Positions 5,466 through 60,247 of a stretch of 64,000 nt of DNA are shown here, one piece after another. Position numbers and translations under genes: made by a program. Position 1 is the first letter of the stretch. Each line of letters starts with the position of its first letter. The notes below the pieces were generated by a model. The model made no database searches. It worked only from the letters and a program-made list of their open reading frames with translations, and was not told where the DNA came from. This stretch comes from Basidiobolus meristosporus CBS 931.73 (taxonomy: Eukaryota; Fungi; Basidiobolomycota), in the NCBI GenBank assembly GCA_002104905.1, contig MCFE01000053.1:1-64000 (forward strand), read 5' to 3'.

Positions 5466-6437
5466 ATGAGTGAAGAAAAGCCAAAATTTAGCTCTTCAGA
5501 AGAAATGTTGGCCTATATTGAGAGTCTTGAACAACAAGTTGCTGAGTTAGCCGGTCAAGGACAGTCCCACACAACTGAGCCTGCGGCCCTCCCTAGTCTG
5601 GACCCAAGAATGGGTAGGCAGACAGACTTGGACTCTTTACATTTTGTGAACACCCAGAGATCATGGTTTACTGGTCAAGGTATACAGAGAGAGGGTGAAG
5701 CCTCATCTGTAAGACCTGCGGTGCCTCCCAATTCCTTGAATCTTGGAGAAGATGGGCAAGGCTCTCTGGACTTCACAAAACAATATAGAGCAACAAATCT
5801 GAAACTTCAGAAACCCAACATCTTTGAAGGCAAAAGACACACTGCCACTCTAGAGACTTGGATATTTGAAGTAGAGCAGTACCTATACTTCTCAGATGAC
5901 TCTGAAGAAGTCAAAGTACATTATGCCTGTTCACTTTTCAGAAAGGAAGCAACCATGTGGTGGAAACTTCACATTCAAGGAATGAATAGGGGCATCTTTC
6001 CACCCATAGCCTCCTGGGCTGACTTTGTTAAAGCATTGAGAAAGAGGTTTACACCTATCAATGCTGATAGAATGGCAAGAGAAAAACTGTCCAAACTCTT
6101 TCAAGCCAAGTCTGTTCAAGAGTACAATGAGCAGTTTAACTTGCTTAGTATGGAAATTCAAAACATGCCTGATACTGAACTACTTGAGCAATACCTAAGA
6201 GGCCTGAAATCCAACACTAGATGGGAAATTGAATACAAAGACCCCAAAACCCTAGTAGAGGCTATGGAACTGGCAGAAAGATATGATGCCATACACTTCA
6301 GAAGGGCTGTCAACCACAGAATTGGTCACTCAAGAACTACTACAGGCCTCAAAGCCAATAACCACATACCTATTGGTAGTCAACCAATCACTGAACAAGG
6401 TGCACACTACCCCACACACTGGAGCCTATGGACCTAG
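5466..6437 (+). CDS. gag: Gag of element 1
   Basis: Retrotrans_gag-like: KPNIFEG...[11 protein letters not shown]...ATMWW...FVKALRKRF...[14 protein letters not shown]. Confidence 0.9.
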
Positions 6438-9400
6438 ATGTTATGCAGAGCACACCAAGACCTTCTAAAGAGGAATGCTTCAAGCTTGGACTATGCTTTT
6501 ACTGCAAGGAACAGGGTCATAAAGTCAATGAATGCCCAAAGAGGCCATTACAAAGAGTATTCCAACTCTCCACTAAGGAGGAGGAGCACACAATCAGCCT
6601 TGTTAAGGAGTATCAGAGGACTCAGAGCTTATATACTACCCCAAAGATGCTGAAACTCCCAGGGATTCTCAACAACAACCAATGTGTCTCTGTACTCATT
6701 GACAGTGGAGCAACTGATGTCTACATTTCAAAAGATGTAGCTGATCAGATGAAGCTACAAACAATCCCTTGCCCCCCAATTCACATCCTCTGTGCCACCA
6801 AGGAATCAATTATAGTGAACAGCAGGACTGAACCCTTGACTTTACAAATCAGGGACTTCCAAGACACCATTTCCCCAATTATCATACCCCAAGCCAACTT
6901 TGAAATCAATGTGGGACAAACTTGGCTAAGAAAGCACAATCCTGACATAAACTGGCAGACTCAGGAAGTTGTAATCAACAAGGATGATGCAAAATATCAT
7001 CTGTCACCCAAACCAACCCTGGACAAAGGCAATGCACCAGAACACACCATATCAAAGAAACAGTTTGCCCACTCTATCAGACAGAATCCCAAACTGTTGC
7101 ACATGATAGCCTTTGCCAAAATCCAAGAGACCACAGAAGTGACAAATGACAGGCTCAAGACCTTGTTAGCAGAGTTTCAAGAGGTTTTTCCCAAGGAAAT
7201 CCCTGCACTACCCCCAAGCAGAGAGATTGACCATGCCATAGAAGTAACAGATGATAAACCAAGAAACAGAGCCCCATATAAGTTCTCCCCAAAGGAAATG
7301 GAGACTTTGAAGGAAACATTGAAGGACTACCTGGCTAAAGGCTGGATAAAACCCAGTAAATCACCATGGGGAGCTCCAGTACTCTTTGCTCCAAAGAAGG
7401 ATGGGAAGCTACGGTTCTGTGTGGACTACAGGGCCCTAAATGCAATCACTGTCAGAAATTCCTACCCATTACCAAGAATTGATGCCCTCTTTGACCAACT
7501 GGGGAAGGCAAAGATATTCTCTAAAATAGACCTGGCATCTGGATATCACCAAATCAGAATTAAGCCTGAAGACACCTCTAAGACAGCATTCAACACAAGA
7601 TATGGTCATTATGAGTTTGTTGTGATGAGCTTTGGCCTGACTAATGCCCCAGCAACATTTCAGACACTCATGAATAGCATCCTGGAACCATATTTAGAGA
7701 AATTTGTCCTGGTCTACTTAGATGACATTCTGATCTATAGTACCAGCATGGATGACCACATGAAGCACTTGAAGACAGTACTGGCTATACTAAAAAAGCA
7801 CAAGCTATATGCACAACTTCCTAAGTGTGAATTCCTCACCAGATCAGTTGAATACCTTGGTCACATAATCTCAGATAAAGGACTACACATGGATCCAGCC
7901 AAGATAGATGCTATCCAGAAATGGGAAGCCCCAAAGTCACTCACTGAAATGAGATCCTTCCTGGGACTTGCATCATATTACAGAAGATTCATCAGGGACT
8001 TTGCAACTATTGCAGCCCCCCTTACAGACTTGACCAAAAAAGAGAAAGACTATATATGGACCCCAAACTGTGAGACAGCTTTCCTAACTCTGAAAGAAAA
8101 GCTATGCCAAACCCCTGTGCTTCAGTTGCCTGATTTCTCAGAACCTTTCTGTGTATACACTGATGCTTCAGATCTAGCTGTTGGAGGGGTACTGACTCAA
8201 AAAGAACACCCGGTTGCTTATGAGTCCAAAAAGCTATCAGTAACTGAACAAAACTACCCAGTCCATGAAAAAGAACTCTATGCCATACTACATTGTCTGA
8301 GAGTGTGGAGATGCTACTTGGAGGGCAAACACTTTGTGGTATATACAGATCATGCATCCCTAAGATACATTCACACCCAGAAGCTATTATCCAGAAGAAT
8401 AACTAGATGGATTGAAGAACTACAACAATTTGATTTTAAAATCCACTACCTCCCTGGGCCAAAGAATACAGTTGCTGATGCACTCTCAAGGCAACATATA
8501 TCAATGGTAGATCATGAGTTGGACTGGCCAGAATACATGCCAGAGTACTTGGCAAGTCAGACAATGCCAGAAGATTTATCACAGGAAGTAAGGGTCAAGA
8601 TTAAGAAAGAAGCAGAGAATTTCTCATATGGTGAAGACGAGGTACTTTACAGACACATGGAAGAAATAGGGCCTGTACCATATATTCCATTTGTATACAG
8701 AGGTGACATGATAATCAAGAATCATAAAGCCTTTGGACATCTGGGCATCCAAGGAACTTATGAAATAACTAAAAGGAGAGCCTGGTGGCCTAAACTCAAA
8801 CAATTTATAGCTGAGACCCTCAAGACCTGCCCTGAGTGCCAGCTGGCTAGACCATACAACAAGGAACATGCCCCATTAGAACCACTGACTCCAGTTCCAG
8901 CATTCTACAGATGGGGAATTGACTTCATTGGAATATTGCCTGAAACTTCAAGAGGGAACAAGTGGATCATAACTGCAATTGACCATACCACTAAGTGGTG
9001 TATAGCAAAAGCCATGCCAGCAGCTACTGCAAAAAATGTTGCAAAATTCCTTTACCTGGAAATCTTTATGCAGTTTGGATGCCCAGGTGAAATTCTGTCT
9101 GACAGAGGAGCAAACTTTTTGGAACAAACCTTGAAAGAATACCTTCAGATAATGGGGGTTAGACATTTGAAGACATCAGCATACCACCCTAGAACAAATG
9201 GGGTCACAGAGAGGTTCAATGGACTCTTTGGGAAGATGCTGACTACTTATGTCAAAGGAGCCAAACATAAGTGGGATGAATTTGTACATCAAGCACTCTT
9301 TGCCTGTCGTATTAGAGTCCATTCAGCAACACAAAAGTCCCCCTTCTACCTAGTGTATGGTACACATCCAAGAATCCCAGGTGATACCTTACCACCATAC

Positions 9401-9814
9401 ATCTGGGACTTAAAGAACCAAAAAGACTTGGCAGAATTCAGAACAAGGGAACTGGAAGAATTAGGACATGCAAGACATGATGCCATCAAGAATTTAAAAC
9501 GACAAGCAGAGAAGATGAAAGAACAGTACAACAAAACAGTGGTAACAAAACCCTTAACTTTGGGAAAACTTGTATTAGTCCGAAATGAAAGTAGGCTAAA
9601 ACTAGAACCACATTGGGTTGGACCCTTTATTATCACAAGAGAAATGCCCTTCAATACATTTCAACTCGCAGACATGTCAGGTAAAGTAAAGGAGGACCTA
9701 GTGCATAGAGACCGACTAAAGGAAGCACAGCTAAAAAACCCAATGACACCACCAACCAAATACTGGTATTACAAGTCCGATAGACAGGACTCTTCAGGAG
9801 AAGAACCTCTTTAA
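6428..9814 (+). CDS. pol: Pol of element 1 (CCHC knuckle, protease, RT, RNase H, integrase)
   Basis: [14 protein letters not shown]; LIDSGA; YLDD; TDAS...[10 protein letters not shown]; HKAFGH...CPEC; WGIDF; GPF. Uninterrupted 1128 codons. Confidence 0.96.
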
Positions 9815-36217: not shown

Positions 36218-37742
36218 ATGACAGAAAACAAAACTACCTCAGCTCCACTAAAGGATACTCCTTCAACAGTAGGAAACTTGCCGCTAGAAGCCCAGCACTT
36301 TTCTGCAACAAACGCTTCCGATAAAAGCAACGCGGGAACCGAGGAATTAGCCAGCGCTCTAAGCAAGACCACCTTGAACGACCAAAGCAGCAATGTCGTT
36401 CAACAGGTTAGTATGAATTGAATAAGCTGCACATCCCATCCGTTTCAGTAACAGTATATTAACTTAGGCCGAAACTGCGTCTAAAGTGGAGTCAAGTAAC
36501 AGACCCTTGGAGGCCCCAGGATATTCTAATTCACCCGGAATCTACCTCCCTGGAGAGAATGCCGAATTCAAATATCCAGAGGGCAACAGACCCTTGGAAA
36601 ATGTACCTGCTAGTATGATTCATCCTTCGGAGACGCCCTACGTTCCGAGCATTTATCGTGCAAATACACCCTGGATGCCTGGAGAGCAAGAGGAACTCCA
36701 AAAGCAGAAGAGTGAGGAGCCCACCAAAACACAGCATGAATATTGGAATCGCCTCGACCACTTTTCGCAGGTATTCCCTATCATATCCCAAGCCCGCTCT
36801 CTGATGCAATTGGCAGTTGGTGATACCCAAGGGGCCAAGCAAACACAAAGCAACTTCATCAACCGATTCCTAGAGGGAGTTGCTGGCAAGCTTCCCGAAG
36901 CCCCTGATCTTACGAATCGCTCAAAGTGGATGGAGGAAACTGCCACTTGTGTCCCGGAATTTGGAAATAAAAAGCTCTACGAAATCTCAATCCCTGCCAC
37001 ACACAACTCGGCAACATACATCACCATTCAAGCAGGCTCGCCTTGGGTTGTGTGTCAACGTCACTCCATCTACAATCAACTCCGTGGTGGAATTCGCTCC
37101 TTGGATTTCCGTGTTTGTGATGATTCAGGGGATGGGAATCTCTGGGTCAGCCACGGCTCACTGTGTAGTCATTTGATCAACCACCTGGAAGAAATCAAAC
37201 AATTCCTACACGAGAACCCCAAAGAGATAGTGCTGTTGCTGATGAAGAAAGATTGGGACAGGAAGCTATCCACCGACGGCCTCGCTACTCTCAAGCGGAT
37301 CATTCTAAACTTCTTCGGAACCAAACTGATCACCAAAAAAGAGATGCTGGAGTCGAGTGTCTCGGAATTGATGAGCCAAGGGAAACAGCTCGGATTCTAC
37401 CATGAGAGTTTGAAGTTTGGCGAGCCAATCGAGCTCTTACCTACCAATTGGTCCTGGGACAAAACCCACTATGACGTCGTAGAGCCATTGTTCGAGGAGC
37501 TTATCAAATGGGGAGAAGAACAGAAATACGAAAACAAGCAGTTCACCGCGTTGGAATGCATCCTGACCCCATCGGTTCACTCGGTTGTCACCACGTTGCG
37601 TCCGCTTAGCGAGGTGACCAAGCCAGTCCATGAAAAACTGCTGGAATTGCTTAGAAGCAACTGGACTGCCCAAACCAACGTGATCACTTTCGACTATTGC
37701 CCCGATGCGATTATCGAAGAGGTGATCAAGAGAAATTTCTAA
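36218..37742 (+). CDS. PI-PLC X-domain phosphodiesterase with long N-terminal extension (intron 36407-36467)
   Basis: ISIPATHNSATY, QLRGGIRSLDFRV, WVSHG (both catalytic His motifs), FLHENPKEIVLL. No signal peptide. Confidence 0.85.
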
Positions 37743-37932
37743 TGTGAGCGACCCAGCAGCTACCTGAACTTTATCCACCTTCCCTACTAGGTAGAGGCGA
37801 TATTACGTGAGATCTCCCCGATCAGCTCTGCTTTGCTTCACTGAGTTTATTTGTTCTTAAACAAGAAGGAGATGTATACGTATAACCTCTATTCCCTTGT
37901 AGAAATAAATTTCAAGATATGCATAAATCACT

Positions 37933-40008
37933 TTAGTAGACCTTGGTTGGTGTAGGGGATGCGTATCCCGGCGACGATGATGTTGTTGGTTGACTACCGT
38001 AATCGCCTGACGGTTGTTTGGGCTTTCCTCCGCTGCCAGAAGGCTTCTTTGAATCGCTATAACCGCTAGATGGTTGCTTAGGCGACCCACCACCGCCAGA
38101 AGGCTTCTTTGAATTACCGTAATTCCCGGGTGACTGTTTGGGTGATCCGCTACCAACGGACGGCTCCTTTGGCTTTCCTTCACCGGCCGAGGGTTTCTTC
38201 GAATCACCATAGCCGCTAGATGGATACTTGGGCGATCCACCACCACCAGAAGGCTTCTTTGAACTTCCGTAATCGCTGGATGGTTTTGGTGACCCGCTGC
38301 CACCGGCAGGCTTCTTGGGTTTTCCTCCACTGTCTGAGGGTTTCTTTGAATCACCATAACCGCTAGATGGTTGCTTGGGCGATCCACTACCACCAGAAGG
38401 CTTCTTTGAATTACCGTAATTGCCGGGTGGCTGTTTGGGTGATCCGCCACCAGCGGACGGTTCCTTTGGCTTTCCTTCACCGGCCGAGGGTTTCTTCGAA
38501 TCACCATAGCCGTTAGATGGATGCTTGGGCGATCCGCCACCATCAGAAGGCTTCTTTGGGTTACCGTAATTGCTGGATGGTTGTTTGGGTGATCCGCTAC
38601 CACCGGACGGTTGCTCAGTCTTTCCTCCACCGCCTGAAGGTTTCTTTGAATCACCATAACCGCTAGATGGTTGCTTGGGCGATCCACCACCACCGGAAGG
38701 CTTCTTTGAACTTCCGTAATCGCTGGATGGTTTTGGTGACCCGCTGCCGCCAGCAGGCTTCTTGGGTTTTCCTCCACTGCCCGAGGGTTCCTCTGATGAT
38801 TTTGGTGATCCGCTACCGCCAGAGGGCTTCTTGGTCTTTTCTCCATTACTTTTGGGTTTTGGGGAACCACCGTAGGCCCCAGACGGCTGCTTCGGCGACC
38901 CGCCACCACCAGAGGGGTTTGGGGCGCTTCCATAATCTCCAGTAGGCTGCTTTGAATTGCCATAGTCTCCGGCAGGTTGCTTTGGTGACCCGCTGCCGCT
39001 TGAACTACCATATTCCCCACCAGCTGTAGGTTGCTTCGGGTTTCCGTAGGCACCAGAGGACGGTGTAGGCATTGCACTATTGCTGGAAGGATATTTTCCA
39101 CCTCCGGATCCGTTGATACTATATGGATTAGCACGTTTGTATACTCCGTAACCTCCGCCAGAACTTTTTGGAGTGGGTGTAGTGGAATGTGTACCAATAG
39201 TGGTGGAATCACAGCTCGTAGTGCCGGTACCAGGAACTGAAGGGGTAGGTGATCCTTTGCCACTTCCTCCTTTCGATTGGGACTTTGAGATGTGACTCTC
39301 TTTGGAAGTAGGGTAACTACCATTACCGGTAGTTGTACTACAATCTTGGCTATTAGAGGCCGATGTCCCTCCATTTGATGTAGGATAACCAGTGTTTTGG
39401 CTATTTGGGGCCGATGTCCCTCCATTTGATGTAGGATAACCAGTGTTTTTCGCTGGGATAAATTTTACTCTACCTTTCCCTGAAGCCTTTTTGGAACTAA
39501 CCCCAGCGGTAGTACTACAGTCTTTGGCGGCTTTGCTAGGCTTCCTGGCGCCCCCTTCTCCCTTATGGCCACCAGATCTGGCCTTGCTGATCTTGGAGTG
39601 TAACCCGAAATCAAATGAGCTGTCCGTAGAAGAATCGCCATTTGGTGGATGGGTTGGTTTGGTAGATTGTGTTGCACTCTTGGTAGTGCAGTCACTTTTT
39701 GGCTTCTTGCTATGCATTTTACCACTTGCGGTCATCTGACTTGTAGGCTCAACATAGGATTGGCAATTACAAGTGGGTGTCGCGGAGGAGTGCGGGACTG
39801 ATTTACTTTTTGTAACCCCACCTCCGTAAGCCATCGATCCGGTGTTATAGGCCATAATTCCGGAAGTTGGGGTTGAAGCGGTTGAGGTTTCACAGGTTGT
39901 CTGACTATCACCACCATTTCCAGTATGGTAGGGACTGTTTTTATGAACAGTAGGCATTGGCACTGCCGCTACCATGGTGCAGAAAAGAAAGCCTGCCAGA
40001 AGTCTCAT
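37933..40008 (-). CDS. Secreted G/S/P/K/Y-rich repeat protein (resilin/extensin-like)
   Basis: Signal peptide MRLLAGFLFCTMVAA; internal VYKR site; C-terminal tandem units such as KKPSGGGGSPKQPSSGYGDS. 691-codon ORF without stops. Confidence 0.88.
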   Translation of the reverse strand: MRLLAGFLFCTMVAAVPMPTVHKNSPYHTGNGGDSQTTCETSTASTPTSGIMAYNTGSMAYGGGVTKSKSVPHSSATPTCNCQSYVEPTSQMTASGKMHSKKPKSDCTTKSATQSTKPTHPPNGDSSTDSSFDFGLHSKISKARSGGHKGEGGARKPSKAAKDCSTTAGVSSKKASGKGRVKFIPAKNTGYPTSNGGTSAPNSQNTGYPTSNGGTSASNSQDCSTTTGNGSYPTSKESHISKSQSKGGSGKGSPTPSVPGTGTTSCDSTTIGTHSTTPTPKSSGGGYGVYKRANPYSINGSGGGKYPSSNSAMPTPSSGAYGNPKQPTAGGEYGSSSGSGSPKQPAGDYGNSKQPTGDYGSAPNPSGGGGSPKQPSGAYGGSPKPKSNGEKTKKPSGGSGSPKSSEEPSGSGGKPKKPAGGSGSPKPSSDYGSSKKPSGGGGSPKQPSSGYGDSKKPSGGGGKTEQPSGGSGSPKQPSSNYGNPKKPSDGGGSPKHPSNGYGDSKKPSAGEGKPKEPSAGGGSPKQPPGNYGNSKKPSGGSGSPKQPSSGYGDSKKPSDSGGKPKKPAGGSGSPKPSSDYGSSKKPSGGGGSPKYPSSGYGDSKKPSAGEGKPKEPSVGSGSPKQSPGNYGNSKKPSGGGGSPKQPSSGYSDSKKPSGSGGKPKQPSGDYGSQPTTSSSPGYASPTPTKVY

Positions 40009-40842
40009 GTTGTAGTTGAAATGGGATGGGTCAATGTCAAATTGACTTCGTGTTGATGCTCTGTGGACACATCGTCGTCGCCTCTTATACCTCCACTGAA
40101 TGCCCAGGGGACCCGGATGAGGCCTTTAATTAATTTTGCTAGGGGCCTAGGGCTGGCCTCTTGAATCAACAACATGTAGAGTCCGAGAAGTGCTCCTCGC
40201 GACGTCGGTGAGATGTTTGAATCAATGTTTGTAGCCGAAGACATCTGTTCCTTAAATTATATCATTAATTTGGAACCTGGGTGTGGTGAAGATGCAACTA
40301 GGACCCGATCTATTGTATAAGCACGTTTAAAGGAGGCTTATGCTAGGGTCACCCAACACTTCCACGATTGCGGTAATAACCAACTTCCAATACCGATTTC
40401 AATCATGGACATGTGGTAGCTAGCCGAATTCGGATATTTTTGCAAACAGATCCCTGCTATTGGCGGAAATGCCTTTGATTGTTCTATTCTACCTGACATC
40501 CAGAATCTACCAATAGTGAGGACCAAGGATGGGATACAAGGGAAAATAGGGAAAATAGGGAAATTAAGAGTACGGTAAGTACACCAACACCTATTGGGTA
40601 TATATATATAGTAAACGGTATCAATATTGTAATAAATTGGGAAATTTAAGTTATCCTAATTCAGGTTGGCGACTCCGAGTTGTGTCAAACTATGGGGCTA
40701 ATGGAAAATACCAAAAATCTCCTCAAACTCCTTTACCTCCCTTTCGCCTCTTTACCCTGATTTTTGTCTACCATTTGCTACTTTACCTTCACCCACTTTG
40801 GTGTTCTACCGGTATAGTGTCCCTATCTATAACTATCTCAAA

Positions 40843-41677
40843 ATGACCAACAAATGCAAATCAGTTTGGCAATACTTTGAACGTCTTGAACCTAAAACTA
40901 AGGGCTCTCAGCATCGTGCCAAATGCCGGTATTGCCCACATGAGTTCAATGGCCAACCTGCCCGTATGATAAAGCATCTGCAAAGCCGCTGTTCAGGTTG
41001 TCCCATTGAGGTACGAGAAGCCCTTGCTGCCCAGGAAGATTACTCTACCCCTACAAAGAAGCCTTGCCTCGAATCCGTTCTCCAGCTCACTAATTCTGGT
41101 TCACATCCTCATACACCCATCCTCCAGCAAATTCCTCATTTGGATTCAACTCCGTCCTCCATCGTCTCAGCACCCCTTACTATAAGTACGCCTTCCAACA
41201 TGGCAACCCTACAGACGATGGCAACTGAAAGCAAACACATGAATGCACCGACTATGCATATGTCAAGCTTGAAAAGCAGCAACGACACGTCCATGAACCT
41301 CCATAATCAGATCCATGATCAATTCCATACGCAGATTCGAAGCCAGGATAGCCCCACTGTGAACGAAATAAACGTGTCTCAAGATCGAATCGAAAAGGAG
41401 CTTGTCGACGCTACTATTGCCAGAACCTTTTACACCACAGGAATCCCATTCTCGGTGATAGAAAATCCGGCATTCATGGAGCTACTGCATACTCTGCGGC
41501 CAGACTACACCCCGCCTTCGCGCAAAGAGTTGGCGGCTATATTCGTAGAGCAAGATTTGTGGCTTTGCAAGGAGACCCCAGCAAAGTAAGTGACGCATTT
41601 CAATGCAGGCTGATGGCGATATTAACCATGCGTTTCCTCACCATAGTAGATTGAATAGCAACATGACTCGTAGGTAG
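40843..41677 (+). CDS. BED zinc-finger protein derived from a hAT transposase N-terminus
   Basis: SVWQYF...KCRYC...MIKHLQSRC (BED) and IARTFYTTGIPFSVIENPAFMELLHTLRPDYTPPSRKEL. Predicted intron 41586-41646; the unspliced ORF ends at 41589. Confidence 0.8.
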
Positions 41678-48299: not shown

Positions 48300-50540
48300 T
48301 TAGTTCCCGTGGGTGTTGAGGTTTTCTTCGATCTTCTTGACTACCTCCCGCGCGGAGTAGGGGATCTTGGTTCCAGGGCCGAAGATGCAGCCCACACCAG
48401 CGTTGTACAGGAAGTCGTAGTCTTGGGTAGGGATGACTCCGCCGCAGAACACAAGCACGTCATTGGCTCCTTGCTTCTTGAGTTCGGCAATCAACTCGGG
48501 AACCAACGTCTTGTGTCCTGCTGCCAGGGAGGATACGCCAACAGCATGAACATCCGAATCAATGGCCTGTCGGGCTACCTCGGCTGGGGTTTGGAACAAT
48601 GGTCCAACGTCAACATCAAATCCGAGATCCGCAAATCCAGATGCGACCACCTTGGCGCCACGGTCATGGCCGTCCTGTCCCATCTTGGCTACAAGGATAC
48701 GGGGGCGACGTCCGTGGTTTTCGCTGAAATGGTCGATCAAGCTGAGAATGCTGGAGACCTCCTCGTGATCTTTATATTCGGATTTGTAAGCGCCAGAAAC
48801 GACTCGAGTGGCTGGCAAATGGCGGCCCCAGATCTTCTCCAAAGCGTCCGAGATTTCGCCTACGGTACATCTGGCACGGGAAGCCTCGATGGAAAGCTCC
48901 AAAAGGTTGCCTTGGCCGGTCTTGGCGCATTCGGTCAAAGCATCAAGACACTGTTGTGCCTTGACTGGGTCTCTGGTGGCCTTCATCTTGTTGATTCTGT
49001 CGATCTGCTTTTGTCTGACCACGGTGTTATCGATGGCCAATACATCGACTGGGTCTTCCTTCTCTAGGCGATACTTGTTGACACCAACGATGGTTTCAAC
49101 CCCAGAGTCGATACGAGCTTGTCTCTTAGCAGCACTTTCTTCGATTCTAAGCTTAGGCATACCAGAGTCGACCGCCTTGGCCATACCACCGAGGCTTTCG
49201 ACTTCATTGATAACCTTCAATGCCTCTTCATAGATTTCATTGGTCAAGCTTTCCATCATGTAAGAGCCGGCCCAAGGATCGGCAACCTTTGGAATACAGG
49301 CTTCCTCTTGGAGAATCAGCTGGGTGTTTCTTGCAATACGTGCACTGAACTCAGTAGGCAGTCCGATGGCCTCATCGAGAGCGTTGGTATGAAGGGATTG
49401 GGTACCACCGAGGGTAGCAGCCATGGCCTCAACCGTGGTACGAATGATGTTGTTGTAAGGATCTTGCTCGGTTAGAGACCAACCAGAGGTCTGACAATGG
49501 GTTCTCAACAGGAGGGATTTGGGGTTGGTGGGGTTGAACTTCTCCTTGAGAAGATTGGCCCACAACCGTCTAGCAGCTCTCATCTTGGCCACCTCCATGT
49601 AGAAGTTCATACCGATCGCCCAGAAGAAGGAAAGTCTGGGGGCGAATTGATCGACCGTCATGCCGGCCTTGATACCAGTTCGGATATACTCAATACCATC
49701 AGCGATGGTGAACGCCAGCTCGAGCACGTTGTTCGCGCCTGCTTCCTGCATATGGTAACCAGAGATGGAAATGGAATTCCATTTGGGCATGTTCTTGGCA
49801 GTGTGGGAGAAGATATCCGCGATGATTTTCATCGACGGCTCAGGTGGGTAGATGAAGGTGTTTCTCACCATGAACTCCTTCAAGATGTCGTTCTGGATGG
49901 TTCCGGCAAGGTCCTTTTGGGTTGCTCCTTGCTCTTCAGCTGCAACCACGTACATACCAAGGATAGGCAATACGGCGCCGTTCATGGTCATGGAGACGGA
50001 CATCTTGTTCAAGGGGATGCCGTCGAATAGAATCTTCATGTCTTCCACACTGTCGATAGCTACGCCGGCCATACCCACGTCACCCGTGACTCTAGGATGG
50101 TCCGAGTCGTAGCCTCTATGGGTGGCCAAATCAAAGGCGACACTAAGACCCTGTTGACCAGCGGCCAAATTTTTACGGTAGAAACGGTTACTTTCTTCGA
50201 CCGTACTGAACCCGGCGTACTGACGAATGGTCCAAGGACGAGCGGTGTACATGGTGGCGTATGGGCCGCGGGTGTAGGGGAACTTCCCCGGAAGCTCATC
50301 TGGAAGGTTTGGTACGTCCGCCTTTGTGTAGACGGGTTTGACGTCGATCCCTTCCGCGGTTTTCCACTTCAGGGCCTCCGCGGGGTCCTTGCCTTTCAGC
50401 TCTTTGGTGGCAAGTTTCACCCAATCCTCAGGGAGTGGGTGCTTGAAAGTTCTGGCTTTGGTCCCAGAGAAGCTTCTTATCGAGCCGAGTATAGGAAGAG
50501 GTCTTTTGATTGCGCTTCTTAGAGCAAAAGTGTAAGTCAT
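48300..50540 (-). CDS. MUT: Adenosylcobalamin-dependent methylmalonyl-CoA mutase, mitochondrial, intronless
   Basis: Presequence; [45 protein letters not shown]12-binding DGHDRG. Confidence 0.97.
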
Positions 50541-56726: not shown

Positions 56727-56819
56727 CAGGCTTGCAACTGGACCCACCCATGAAAATCCAGCATATCCAAGCATCTTCCTTTGCCACAAAATCTATCCAG
56801 TCCTTGAGAATGCCTGTCA
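56699..56819 (+). other. -1 ribosomal frameshift signal (slippery heptamer plus stem-loop/pseudoknot)
   Basis: G GGA AAC in gag frame at 56699-56705, 6-nt spacer, perfect 11-bp stem (56712-56722/56733-56743). Pol frame is -1 and open from 56687. Confidence 0.88.
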
Positions 56820-59800
56820 AAATCCAGATCCCTGACTCCAGTCCTGTCCCAGCCCTAGCCCTGATTGATTCCGGTGCTTCATCCTGTTTCATTGACCAAG
56901 CCTTTGTCCAGAAGCACTCTATTCCTGTTACCTTAAAATCCTGTCCAGTCCAAGTAGAAGTTATTGATGGAAGATCACTCTCCTCTGGTGCCATTACCCA
57001 TGAAACATGCTTACTCCAGCTGTCCAGTACTGCCCACCAAGAAAGAATCGCCTTCAACATCATCAACTCACCACACTATCCTATTGTGCTTGGAAGCTCA
57101 TGGTTGAGCTACCACAATCCAAGTATTGATTGGAAATCCAAGATCCTGTCATTCACCAGATCCCACCAAGTCAACTCCATGAAATCTCCAGACCCAGATA
57201 ACCGTGAAAAGACGGTTGCCAACAGTTCAACAGCCCAAGATACCTTACCAGCTGAAGGAGCCCCCTCAGCAACTATACCAGCCAAGTACCAAGAGTTTGC
57301 CCATGTCTTTGACAAGAAGAAAGCAGAACTCCTCCCTGACCATCGGCCTTATGACTGCCCTATTGACCTTGAAGATGGAAAAGTCCCTCCATTTGGCCCA
57401 ATATATAACCTCTCCCAGCCGGAGTTGAAAGAACTTCAAGGTTATATTCAAGAAAACCTCCAGAAGGGTTTTATTCAGCACTCCAAATCACCTGCTGGAG
57501 CCCCAATCCTCTTTGTCAAGAAGAAGGATGGCACCCTCAGAATGTGTGTGGACTACCGTGCTTTGAATAAGATCACAGTCAAGAACCGCTACCCCCTGCC
57601 CCTGATCAACACACTGTTGGATCAGCTATCTGCTGCCCAAGTCTTCACCAAGATAGACTTGAGAGGAGCTTACAATCTTGTCAGAATCAAGCCTGGTGAT
57701 GAATGGAAAACTGCCTTTTGCACAAGATATGGTCACTTTGAGTACAAAGTAATGCCATTTGGCCTCACCAATGCCCCTGCTGTGTTTCAACACCTCATGA
57801 ATGACATATTCCGTGAATACCTTGACCATTTTGTGGTAATCTACCTTGATGATATTCTCATATACTCCAAGAGCCAAGATGAACATGATGAACATGTCAA
57901 GAAAGTATTGAGAAAACTAGACTCTGCCGGTCTCTATGCCAAGCTAGAGAAGTGTGAATTTGACCAGAGAGAAGTGGAATTTCTTGGTTATCTCATCAGC
58001 CCTGAGGGAACAAGAATGGACCCAAAGAAAGTTGACTCAGTCCAATCCTGGAAAACTCCAAGCTCAGTCAAGGAAGTACAATCCTTCCTGGGATTTGCCA
58101 ACTTCTATTGCAGGTTCATAGCCAACTACTCCAAGATAGTCACCCCTCTGACAAAGCTTACCCAGAAGAACACACCTTTTGCCTGGAATGAGGAGCAATC
58201 CAGCTCATTCAACCAACTCAAGAAATCTTTCCTGAAGGCCCCCCTGCTTGCCCACCCTGACCTTGAGAAGCAATTCATAGTGGAGACTGATGCTTCTGAT
58301 TTTGCCCTTGGTGCCATACTCTCCCAGTATGATGGGGACAATGTGTTGCACCCCATTGCATTCTACTCTTGGAAGTTTTCCCCTGCAGAGATCAACTATG
58401 ATATCTATGATAAGGAGTTGCTTGCAATCATTGTAGCCTTTGAGCAATGGAGACACTACCTGGACGGTGCAAAACACAAAATCAAAGTCTTCTGTGACCA
58501 TAAGAACCTTGAGTACTTTGCAACTTCCAAAGTACTAAACCGGAGACAAGCCAGATGGTCACTCTTCCTGTCCAGCTTTGACTTTACTATCACCTATAGA
58601 CCTGGTGCAAAACAAGGAAAGCCTGATGCCCTGTCCAGAAAAAAGGAATATGCCCTGGAAGAGGGAGATGATGCCTGTTGGCAAATGGAACACCCATTCC
58701 TGAGCAAGAAACATTTTGAGATTCTTGCCACCCAGTCCTCAAGTCTTGTCATCCCTTCATTCCTAGTAAGGATATCAGAAGCCCAAGCCTCTGATATGAC
58801 TTCCAACACCGTGAAGAAATATCTGGAATCCCCAGTTGGGCCCCCTCCCAAGTTCCCAAACATCCAGAACCTGCATTTGGTAAACAACCTCATCTACCAC
58901 AAGCAGCAGCTCTATGTCCCAGACCTTGCCACCCAGCTAGACATCATTAAGTCTCGGCATGATTCAATGGCTGCAGGCCACTTTGGTACTGCCAAAACCT
59001 TAAATGCTATCAAAAGAGATTTCTGGTGGCCTAGAATGATAACTCTTATCAAAGAGTACATTCTGACTTGTGATATTTGCAACCGTGCAAAACCAGCCAG
59101 ACACCAGCTCTATGGACTTCTTCAGCCCTTGCCTATCCCAGAACACCAATGGAGATCTATATCTATGGACTTCATTACTGACCTCCCTGAGTCATGTGGC
59201 TTCAATGCTATACTTGTAGTGGCTGACCGGCTGACCAAGATGGCTCACTTTATCCCTTGCTGTAAGAACACTGATGCAAAAGAAACTGCTGCTTTAGTCC
59301 TGAAGAATATTTTCCGCCTTCATGGTATCCCCAGTGATATTGTGTCAGATAGAGGCCCACAGTTTGTGTCCAAGTTTTGGAAACACTTCATGAAATACTT
59401 TGGTGTTCAAGTCAAGCTCTCTACTGCTTTCCATCCACAGTCTGATGGCCAGACTGAAAGAATCAACCAGATTCTAGAGCAATACCTCCGGTGCTATATC
59501 AATTACCAGCAAGACAATTGGGTTGATCTACTCCCTGTTGCTGAGTTTGCCTACAACAACTCAAGCCATAGTGCAACCGGTTTTACACCATTCTATGCAA
59601 ACTATGGATTCCACCCTCAGTTTGATATCCAGATTCCAACAAACCCAATGAGCCCACATGCGGCTGAACATGCCCAAGCAATCCAGGACATCCAGAATAC
59701 CCTCAAGGAAGAACTATCCTTAGCTCAGGAAAGCTACAAGAAATTTGCCAATCTAAAACAGCATCCCAGCCCTGATCTTAATGAAGGAGATTTTGTATGG

Positions 59801-60247
59801 CTGCTCAGAAGAAACATCAGCACCAACCGCCCTTGTGACAAATTGGATTTCAAGAAACTTGGTCCTTTCAAGATCAAGAAGAAGCTTAGCCCTATAGTAT
59901 ATCAGCTACAGTTACCAGCAAGTATGAAAATCCATGATACTTTCCATGTGTTCCTCCTGGAGCCGTATTGTAGGAACACCTTGCCAAACCGGCAAGAAGC
60001 AAAGCCCCAAGCTATCCAGGTTGACCAACATCAAGAATTTGAAGTTAAACAGATTCTAGACTCCAAGTATATCCGGTCAAAGCTGTACTACTTAGTAGAC
60101 TGGATTGGTTATGGCCCAAGTGACCAAACATGGGAACCAGCTACACATCTCACTAATTGTCAAGAACTAGTTACCCAGTTCCACCAACAATATCCTGCAA
60201 AACCTGCCCCAAAGGGAAACAGAGCTTTGCCTGGAAGAGGAGAATAG
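56732..60247 (+). CDS. pol: Pol of element 2 (protease, RT, RNase H, integrase, chromodomain); expressed by frameshift
   Basis: [23 protein letters not shown]...CDIC, SMDFI, GPF; chromodomain EFEVKQILD...[17 protein letters not shown]. Confidence 0.96.

Follow-up and report, generated by a model that had tools for sequence, protein, structure and literature searches.

We describe a gene for a lysine-rich, tyrosine-bearing repeat protein in the fungus Basidiobolus meristosporus CBS 931.73. It lies on contig MCFE01000053.1 of assembly GCA_002104905.1, of which the first 64,000 nucleotides of the forward strand (the window) were analysed, and it occupies positions 37933..40008 of the minus strand as a single exon of 691 codons plus stop. 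The open reading frame (ORF) list and the NCBI gene model give the same intronless gene of 691 amino acids (aa), and window and record coordinates are the same. Comparison with the orthologue of Basidiobolus ranarum indicates that the gene is real, functional and selectively maintained. In composition the product is a hybrid, in which resilin-like tyrosine modules are placed within a mussel-like lysine frame. With about even confidence we propose that it is an exported, disordered polycation, which is cut once at a Lys-Arg (KR) site and then acts as a polymer of a glue or of the wall matrix. A sequence-only reading of this DNA had described a resilin-like secreted protein, elastic or adhesive, released by Kex2; the adhesive or matrix arm of that description fits the composition better than the elastic arm, as far as residue content and charge can tell.

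The repeat array

The part after the KR site is 399 aa long and is free of Cys, Arg, Phe, Trp and Leu, with Gly (23%), Ser (23%), Pro (16%), Lys (14%) and Tyr (5%) as main residues. The sequence-only reading had given ~370 aa made almost only of Gly, Ser, Pro and Lys; the dominance of these four residues is correct, but the length is 399 aa and their share is 76%. This C-terminal half starts with an irregular Gly/Ser/Pro/Tyr lead-in (aa 293-393; 38830..39132, minus strand), in which YG motifs come at 10-20-residue intervals, and continues as a regular decamer array (aa 394-673; 37990..38829, minus strand) with ~50-aa and 99-aa higher-order units. The decamer array contains Gly 25%, Ser 24%, Pro 16%, Lys 16% and Tyr 4%, and is without Arg, Cys, Phe and Trp. 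Its one aromatic residue is Tyr, and aliphatic residues are nearly absent.

We counted 27 decamers, 10 of them Tyr-bearing (consensus PKQPSSGYGD) and 17 Tyr-free (consensus SKKPSGGGGS). A Lys-X-Pro-Ser/Ala unit is present in each decamer, and the PSxxYG tyrosine in every second or third. The tyrosines are spaced by 20, 30, 20, 30, 20 and 29 residues, and Tandem Repeats Finder (TRF) detected a 150-nt unit in 5.3 copies (80%) and a higher-order 297-nt unit in 2.4 copies (88%; 38009-38796), which agrees with the earlier description of ten-residue modules built into ~50-aa super-repeats, a 20-mer alternating with a 29/30-mer. The motifs named before, PSSGYG, PSSDYG, PSSNYG, PSGAYG and PTGDYG, are all present. 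The number of YG motifs, earlier put at about 16, is 15 past the KR site and 17 across the whole protein.

This regularity is far from chance. Compared with composition-preserving shuffles, PS..YG has 9 occurrences where 0.18 are expected, K[KQE]P[SA] has 22 where 0.42 are expected, and the period-10 autocorrelation of Pro, Lys and Gly reached z = 7.6-8.5. The protein is strongly basic, with an isoelectric point (pI) of 9.8 and a net charge of +52 for the whole protein and a pI of 9.9 for the C-terminal half. The array has 55 Lys and no Arg, with a net charge of +0.10 per residue, and 21 of the 55 Lys precede Pro.

A second ORF of 522 aa runs across the array in another frame of the same strand (37857-39425, minus strand). 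This frame lacks a leader and is not backed by the orthologue; it is a by-product of periodic, stop-poor repeat DNA.

Orthologue in B. ranarum and purifying selection

A word-indexed protein search with the whole protein gave a sole relative, KAK9766318.1 of B. ranarum. The gene order is common to both species, with CorA, EF-G, SET, histone and BED-finger genes followed by the repeat-protein gene. The two repeat proteins are 46% identical over alignable columns with many insertions and deletions, and the flanking proteins are 78-99% identical. Kept in the orthologue are the leader, exactly seven mature Cys, the FDFGLHSK motif, a KR where the two halves join, and Lys-rich decamers with PSxDYG.

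In the annotated KAK9766318.1 (588 aa) the C-terminus is an artefact of an artificial splice at the end of contig JASJQH010000166.1 (L002:10001-11856). The genomic ORF of B. ranarum continues with more decamers up to the last base of the contig and has no stop, which means that the assembly broke inside the array. We used this unspliced genomic ORF for comparison and left out the annotated C-terminus; the gene model of B. ranarum is incomplete.

Between the species the proportion of synonymous differences is saturated (pS 0.69-0.76) and that of nonsynonymous differences is 0.36-0.40 (pN). Within the B. meristosporus gene, repeat copies 99 and 149 residues apart showed synonymous divergence (dS) of 0.40-0.50 and nonsynonymous divergence (dN) of 0.09, with a ratio (omega) of 0.18-0.23, and a third pair at 100-residue offset gave an omega of 0.39; synonymous divergence between copies is about four times the nonsynonymous. 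Gly, Ser, Pro, Lys and Tyr are each encoded by every one of their synonymous codons. The low omega between copies together with the diverse codon use points to an old array whose peptide sequence is under purifying selection; on these sequence grounds it is neither a young microsatellite nor a chance ORF.

These data bear on the simplest alternative, that the gene is a non-functional low-complexity ORF which arose by repeat expansion and was called by the annotation pipeline. No known domain is found in the protein, and the 522-aa ORF in the second frame shows that such repeats can mimic ORFs. Against it stand an orthologue in synteny, in which leader, Cys, motif islands and reading frame are kept, a dN/dS near 0.2 between repeat copies whose dS is 0.4-0.5, and codon use that is diverse, unlike that of a young microsatellite. 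We regard this alternative as extremely improbable.

Export, disorder and the KR site

The protein is predicted to be exported, as it has one N-terminal hydrophobic segment and no other. Residues 3-16 are the sole hydrophobic stretch of the 691 aa, and positions -3 and -1 ahead of Val16-Pro17 are Val and Ala. The predicted signal peptide (aa 1-15; 39964..40008, minus strand) consists of MR, a hydrophobic core and V-A-A before VP; it was assigned by hydropathy and by its conservation in B. ranarum, in line with the signal peptide of the sequence-only reading.

By structure prediction the protein has no fold anywhere and is disordered. AlphaFold2 gave the N-terminal half a mean predicted local distance difference test (pLDDT) score of 42 with no fold and only a weak hairpin at aa 79-110, and the ESM Atlas model, which covers the whole protein, had a pLDDT of 0.39. 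No usable feature match was obtained from ESM Atlas, and its structure rows had template modelling (TM) scores <= 0.28, which are meaningless given the disordered model.

Apart from the leader with its Arg2, Lys291-Arg292 (39133..39138, minus strand; context GYGVY-KR-ANPYS) is the sole dibasic [KR]R site and a candidate Kex2 site; its position had been given exactly before. In B. ranarum the junction of the halves reads YGSHY-KR-SIADY, and a second site, SYH-KR-ANNYN, lies within the array. The KRANxY context is kept in the orthologue. We infer Kex2-type cleavage at a conserved Y-x-K-R site, which would split the N-terminal half from the array.

Downstream of the N-terminal half, Arg is found only inside KR sites in both species. 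Change of Lys to Arg needs a single transition and is usually tolerated, and the absence of Arg at 55 Lys positions despite dS of 0.4-0.5 therefore points to selection. Selection for lysine-specific chemistry would fit this absence, and so would selection against accidental Kex2 sites in a Lys-rich polymer. Both explanations are consistent with a product which stays intact after one cut at the junction.

A KR site also raises the possibility that the gene encodes no material, but a precursor from which Kex2 would release secreted bioactive peptides or a polycationic polypeptide with antimicrobial or host-directed action, in the way of Kex2-processed repeat proteins (KEPs). The KR context is conserved, B. 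ranarum has a second KR in its array, and the product is polycationic. This strain is moreover the richest known in such proteins, with 43 Kex2-type precursors reported, the most among 1461 fungal strains surveyed. KEPs share with the Basidiobolus protein a signal peptide, a dibasic site and a repetitive secreted part, but their repeats are delimited by KR/RR, whereas the 27 Basidiobolus decamers contain no [KR]R. With one [KR]R in 691 aa the decamers would not be individually released, and a 400-aa product is not peptide-like. KK-P bonds, too, are poor Kex2 substrates, which counts against a peptide precursor. The assignment to the KEP class was rejected, as the decamers are not delimited by dibasic sites, and we consider a precursor or host-acting polypeptide very unlikely.

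In Ustilago Rep1, an example of a KEP, and in Candida Hwp1 the repetitive secreted part ends up on the cell surface. Compared with these proteins, the Basidiobolus protein is without a glycosylphosphatidylinositol (GPI) signal, and the composition is unrelated.

Relatives and taxonomic distribution

Scans of the whole protein with Pfam and NCBIfam gave no match (Pfam at E<=1), and a word-indexed search restricted to aa 1-295 found no relative. A phmmer search of 1.84 billion representatives returned 54 matches at E<=1e-3, all of which are confined to aa 400-690. With the exception of P0001, these matches were rejected as homologues; they are unrelated proteins that share Pro-containing repeats of period ~10, such as a ZP-domain mucin-like protein, a Brassica AP2 protein and bacterial repeat or surface proteins.

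Only one of the phmmer matches, P0008, is a resilin-type repeat protein (E 7e-10), and it has nothing in common with the Basidiobolus protein outside the repeat. P0008 (L003:1860-3011, Logan SRR19201368) is a secreted-looking protein of 383 aa with 11 PS..YG in KPSxEYGVPA units and a faint match to DUF4794.

Neither the word-indexed search nor phmmer gave a relative outside Basidiobolus. On present sequence evidence the family is known only from this genus and its likeness to resilin is convergent, as had been supposed earlier; no Pfam family is matched, and the phmmer matches are repeat-only.

Comparison with resilin

Known repeats of resilin are GGRPSDSYGAPGGGN, GYSGGRPGGQDLG and AQTPSSQYGAP, and the decapeptide of mussel MFP-1 is AKPSYPPTYK (PMC9999432). 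Insect pro-resilin (exon 1 of Drosophila CG15920 with GGRPSDSYGAPGGGN, Anopheles with AQTPSSQYGAP) has in common with the Basidiobolus protein a disordered Gly/Pro/Ser matrix, the PSxxYG core and secretion. The core PS(S/G)xYG of Basidiobolus matches the resilin cores PSDSYG and PSSQYG. The proposed likeness to the resilin repeat PS-x-x-YG-AP therefore stands for the core, which is far above chance, but not for its ending: the resilin core ends in YGAP, and the YGAP count in Basidiobolus is 0.

Tyr density is similar in the two, with 4-5% in Basidiobolus and 7-9% in resilin. There are further differences. The repeats of resilin are net-neutral, whereas the array is positively charged as given above, and the repeat frame is a Lys-rich decamer instead of a 15-, 13- or 11-mer. 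Arthropod pro-resilin has a Rebers-Riddiford chitin-binding domain, and the Basidiobolus protein has none. The value of 2Pro+Gly, computed from residue fractions, is 0.56-0.57, below the elastomer threshold of 0.6 and below Rec1-resilin (0.631). No homology to arthropod resilins was found by phmmer, and the likeness is limited to repeats. Identity as a true resilin was rejected with no homology, no chitin-binding domain and a polycationic array.

The biology of the host was also considered. The sequence-only reading had judged its proposal especially interesting for a species that discharges spores ballistically or makes sticky conidia, and this suits the genus. Basidiobolus discharges conidia by a 'rocket' mechanism, which is a turgor-driven, circumscissile rupture of the pressurised conidiophore swelling. 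Members of Basidiobolaceae also form passively dispersed capilliconidia, and in the sister genus an apical beak covered with adhesive material was described.

A resilin-type elastomer could therefore be imagined as a rubber linked by di- and tri-tyrosine in the vesicle wall of the conidiophore or in that of the conidial papilla, where it would store energy for the 'rocket' discharge. The excess of PS..YG with matching cores, a Tyr content near that of resilin, the Gly/Pro-rich disordered sequence, the discharge of conidia by rupture of a pressurised wall, and the resilin-type look-alike P0008 with its KPSxEYGVPA repeats all agree with such a rubber. The positive charge, the lack of YGAP, of a chitin-binding domain and of homology, and the 2Pro+Gly value under the threshold disagree with it; and a turgor-driven circumscissile rupture needs no protein rubber. 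We think this elastomer unlikely.

Comparison with marine adhesives and the proposed role

In its lysine content the protein is nearer to marine adhesives than to resilin. Mussel MFP-1 and the sandcastle-worm proteins Pc-1/-2/-4/-5 resemble the Basidiobolus protein in having Lys without Arg and a pI of about 10, in being secreted and in being disordered. MFP-1 and the array are both tandem decapeptides with Lys-Pro-Ser and Tyr, alike in design but not homologous. The Basidiobolus protein has far more Gly and Ser than MFP-1, and its Cys/Ser/Thr half and KR site are absent from these marine proteins. MFP-1 and the Lys/Gly/Tyr polycations of sandcastle-worm cement bind surfaces, coacervate with polyanions or alone via Lys-Tyr cation-pi contacts, and then undergo oxidative curing. 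Even unmodified decapeptides with Lys and Tyr self-coacervate through cation-pi contacts.

We propose that the glue or wall-matrix polymer would be made as follows. After removal of the signal peptide, a Kex2-type protease would cut the Y-x-K-R site in the Golgi and free the ~400-aa array from the Ser/Thr- and Cys-rich N-terminal half, which is probably O-mannosylated and able to form disulfides. Outside the cell the flexible polycation might bind anionic partners or surfaces via its ~55 lysines. Cohesion would be given by tyrosine chemistry, in which cation-pi contacts may be joined by oxidative cross-links of the Tyr-Tyr or quinone-Lys type. A glue or a wall-matrix (cement) component would then be the most likely role, and rubber-like extensibility would be a by-product of the disordered cross-linked network and not the main task. 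Host biology, with capilliconidia that are adhesive at the tip and discharge driven by pressure, speaks for such a role. Candidate sites are the adhesive tip of the capilliconidium, the wall of the conidium or conidiophore, and the hyphal surface.

A narrower version of this role would make the polycation one half, the cationic one, of a complex-coacervate glue. It would be co-secreted with acidic Gly/Tyr repeat proteins which are encoded elsewhere in the Basidiobolus genome, and the two would condense into the droplet at the capilliconidial tip or into a conidial wall cement, cured through Tyr and Lys. The charge contrast suggests, by analogy, a polycation-polyanion pairing as in sandcastle-worm cement. 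We hold this narrower version to be unlikely. If it is true, the protein would be an independently evolved fungal counterpart of the adhesives of sandcastle worm and mussel, with a resilin-like tyrosine motif.

Several points weigh against a role as glue or wall-matrix polymer. Tyr is five-fold scarcer than in MFP-1 (4.3% against 20%). Within ~10 kb of the gene there is no tyrosinase, peroxidase or other enzyme for curing. With Ser at 23% of the array, heavy O-mannosylation could make it a coat that is stiff, hydrated and mucin-like. Assignment of the signal peptide was by eye, from hydropathy and the -3/-1 rule. The KR count is not above chance given the composition (P about 0.5), so the case for processing rests on position, on the conserved KRANxY context and on the heavy use of Kex2 precursors by this strain. 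Our literature search found no paper on this gene. Searches for fungal resilin-like proteins and for Basidiobolus adhesive or secretome data found nothing specific, and no paper naming a protein of the Basidiobolus spore adhesive or discharge wall was found.

Should the protein be a glue or matrix protein, the Lys/Tyr decapeptide design would have been invented independently outside animals, and its short, Cys-free, easily expressed sequence would be of interest for biomaterials. It is a concrete and testable candidate, which brings together the tyrosine motif of resilin and the lysine chemistry of marine glue in a fungus that can be cultured. Were it no more than a mannosylated coat protein, the gene would be a commonplace one for a rapidly evolving surface protein.

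Comparison with cell wall proteins

Among the alternatives, such a coat is the most probable. Here the protein would be a mucin-like wall mannoprotein, with both halves densely O-mannosylated, and would form a hydrated, protease-resistant, positive coat that could serve, for instance, in passing the herptile gut; its tyrosines would not be covalently cross-linked, and it would have no part as glue or spring. Ser and Thr make up 32% of the N-terminal half, and the Ser content of the array is also high (23%). Trypsin-like enzymes cut Lys-Pro poorly, and Pro follows 21 of the 55 Lys. The gene also evolves fast, as those of surface coat proteins typically do: identity between the species is 46% here and 78-99% in the flanking genes. 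A mannosylated coat, however, leaves unexplained the strict 20/30 spacing, the conservation of the PSxxYG tyrosine between species and between repeat copies, and the exclusive use of Lys; nor is there a GPI-type tail or a PIR motif for wall anchoring. We take it to be rather unlikely.

The established classes of wall protein were compared in the same way. Hydropathy across the whole protein showed no GPI-type hydrophobic C-terminal tail and no hydrophobic window beyond aa 1-21, and the PIR motif Q[IV]xDGQ[IVP]Q has 0 occurrences in the protein. The class of GPI- or PIR-anchored wall proteins was thus rejected on its defining features, with no GPI signal and no PIR repeats.

Plant extensins, proline-rich proteins and glycine-rich proteins are basic repetitive wall polymers which are insolubilised by Tyr cross-links and bind acidic wall polysaccharides. 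The Basidiobolus protein has the basic, repetitive and secreted character in common with extensins, and no homology. The extensin motifs SPPP, SPP and Y.Y each occur 0 times in it; with all of them absent, the extensin or hydroxyproline-rich glycoprotein class was rejected. Fungi are not known to make hydroxyproline arabinosides.

The N-terminal half and the C-terminal tail

The N-terminal half (aa 16-290; 39139..39963, minus strand) is Ser/Thr-rich and basic, and has seven Cys in the mature part, mainly within (D/E)DC(S/T)T contexts. The Cys-containing, S/T-rich character ascribed to it before is borne out by these counts. The longest block of this half that is invariant between both species in the alignment is the FDFGLHSK island (aa 132-139; 39592..39615, minus strand).

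A young tandem duplication of 51 nt (17 aa), NTGYPTSNGGTSA.NSQ in two copies, is located at 39346..39449 (minus strand), where TRF gave 2.0 copies at 96% and the repeat is also seen in the protein sequence. In the MAFFT alignment B. ranarum is gapped at 12 columns of the second NTGYPTSNGGTSA.NSQ copy. This duplication shows that the N-terminal half, too, evolves through unit duplication.

At the other end, after the array, the protein closes with a short hydrophilic tail (aa 674-691 plus stop; 37933..37989, minus strand), as judged from sequence and hydropathy.

Neighbouring genes in the window

The neighbours of the repeat-protein gene are PI-PLC-X, asparaginase, BED-finger, histone, SET and EF-G genes, which are housekeeping or unrelated, and no functional gene cluster around it was seen among them. 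The convergent neighbour, ~190 bp away tail-to-tail, encodes a phosphatidylinositol-specific phospholipase C (PI-PLC) X-domain protein (36486-37742, plus strand; Pfam E 4e-8) with no evident functional link. Enzymes of the PI-PLC-X family can release GPI-anchored surface proteins.

The BED zinc-finger ORF (40798-41589, plus strand) looked at first like a remnant of a hAT transposase. Its syntenic copy in B. ranarum has 85-92% aa identity, and this conservation at a syntenic position makes a domesticated gene, or an ordinary gene of the host, the likelier reading.

Elsewhere in the window, a full-length methylmalonyl-CoA mutase with the B12-binding domain is encoded at 48300-50540 (minus strand; Pfam E 4e-238). 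Cobalamin-dependent enzymes are not known from most fungi, so this one deserves attention in an early-diverging lineage. There are also two long intact pol ORFs of Ty3/gypsy type, with protease, reverse transcriptase, RNase H and integrase, at 6428-9814 and 56732-60247 (both plus strand), and the second one has a chromodomain in addition.

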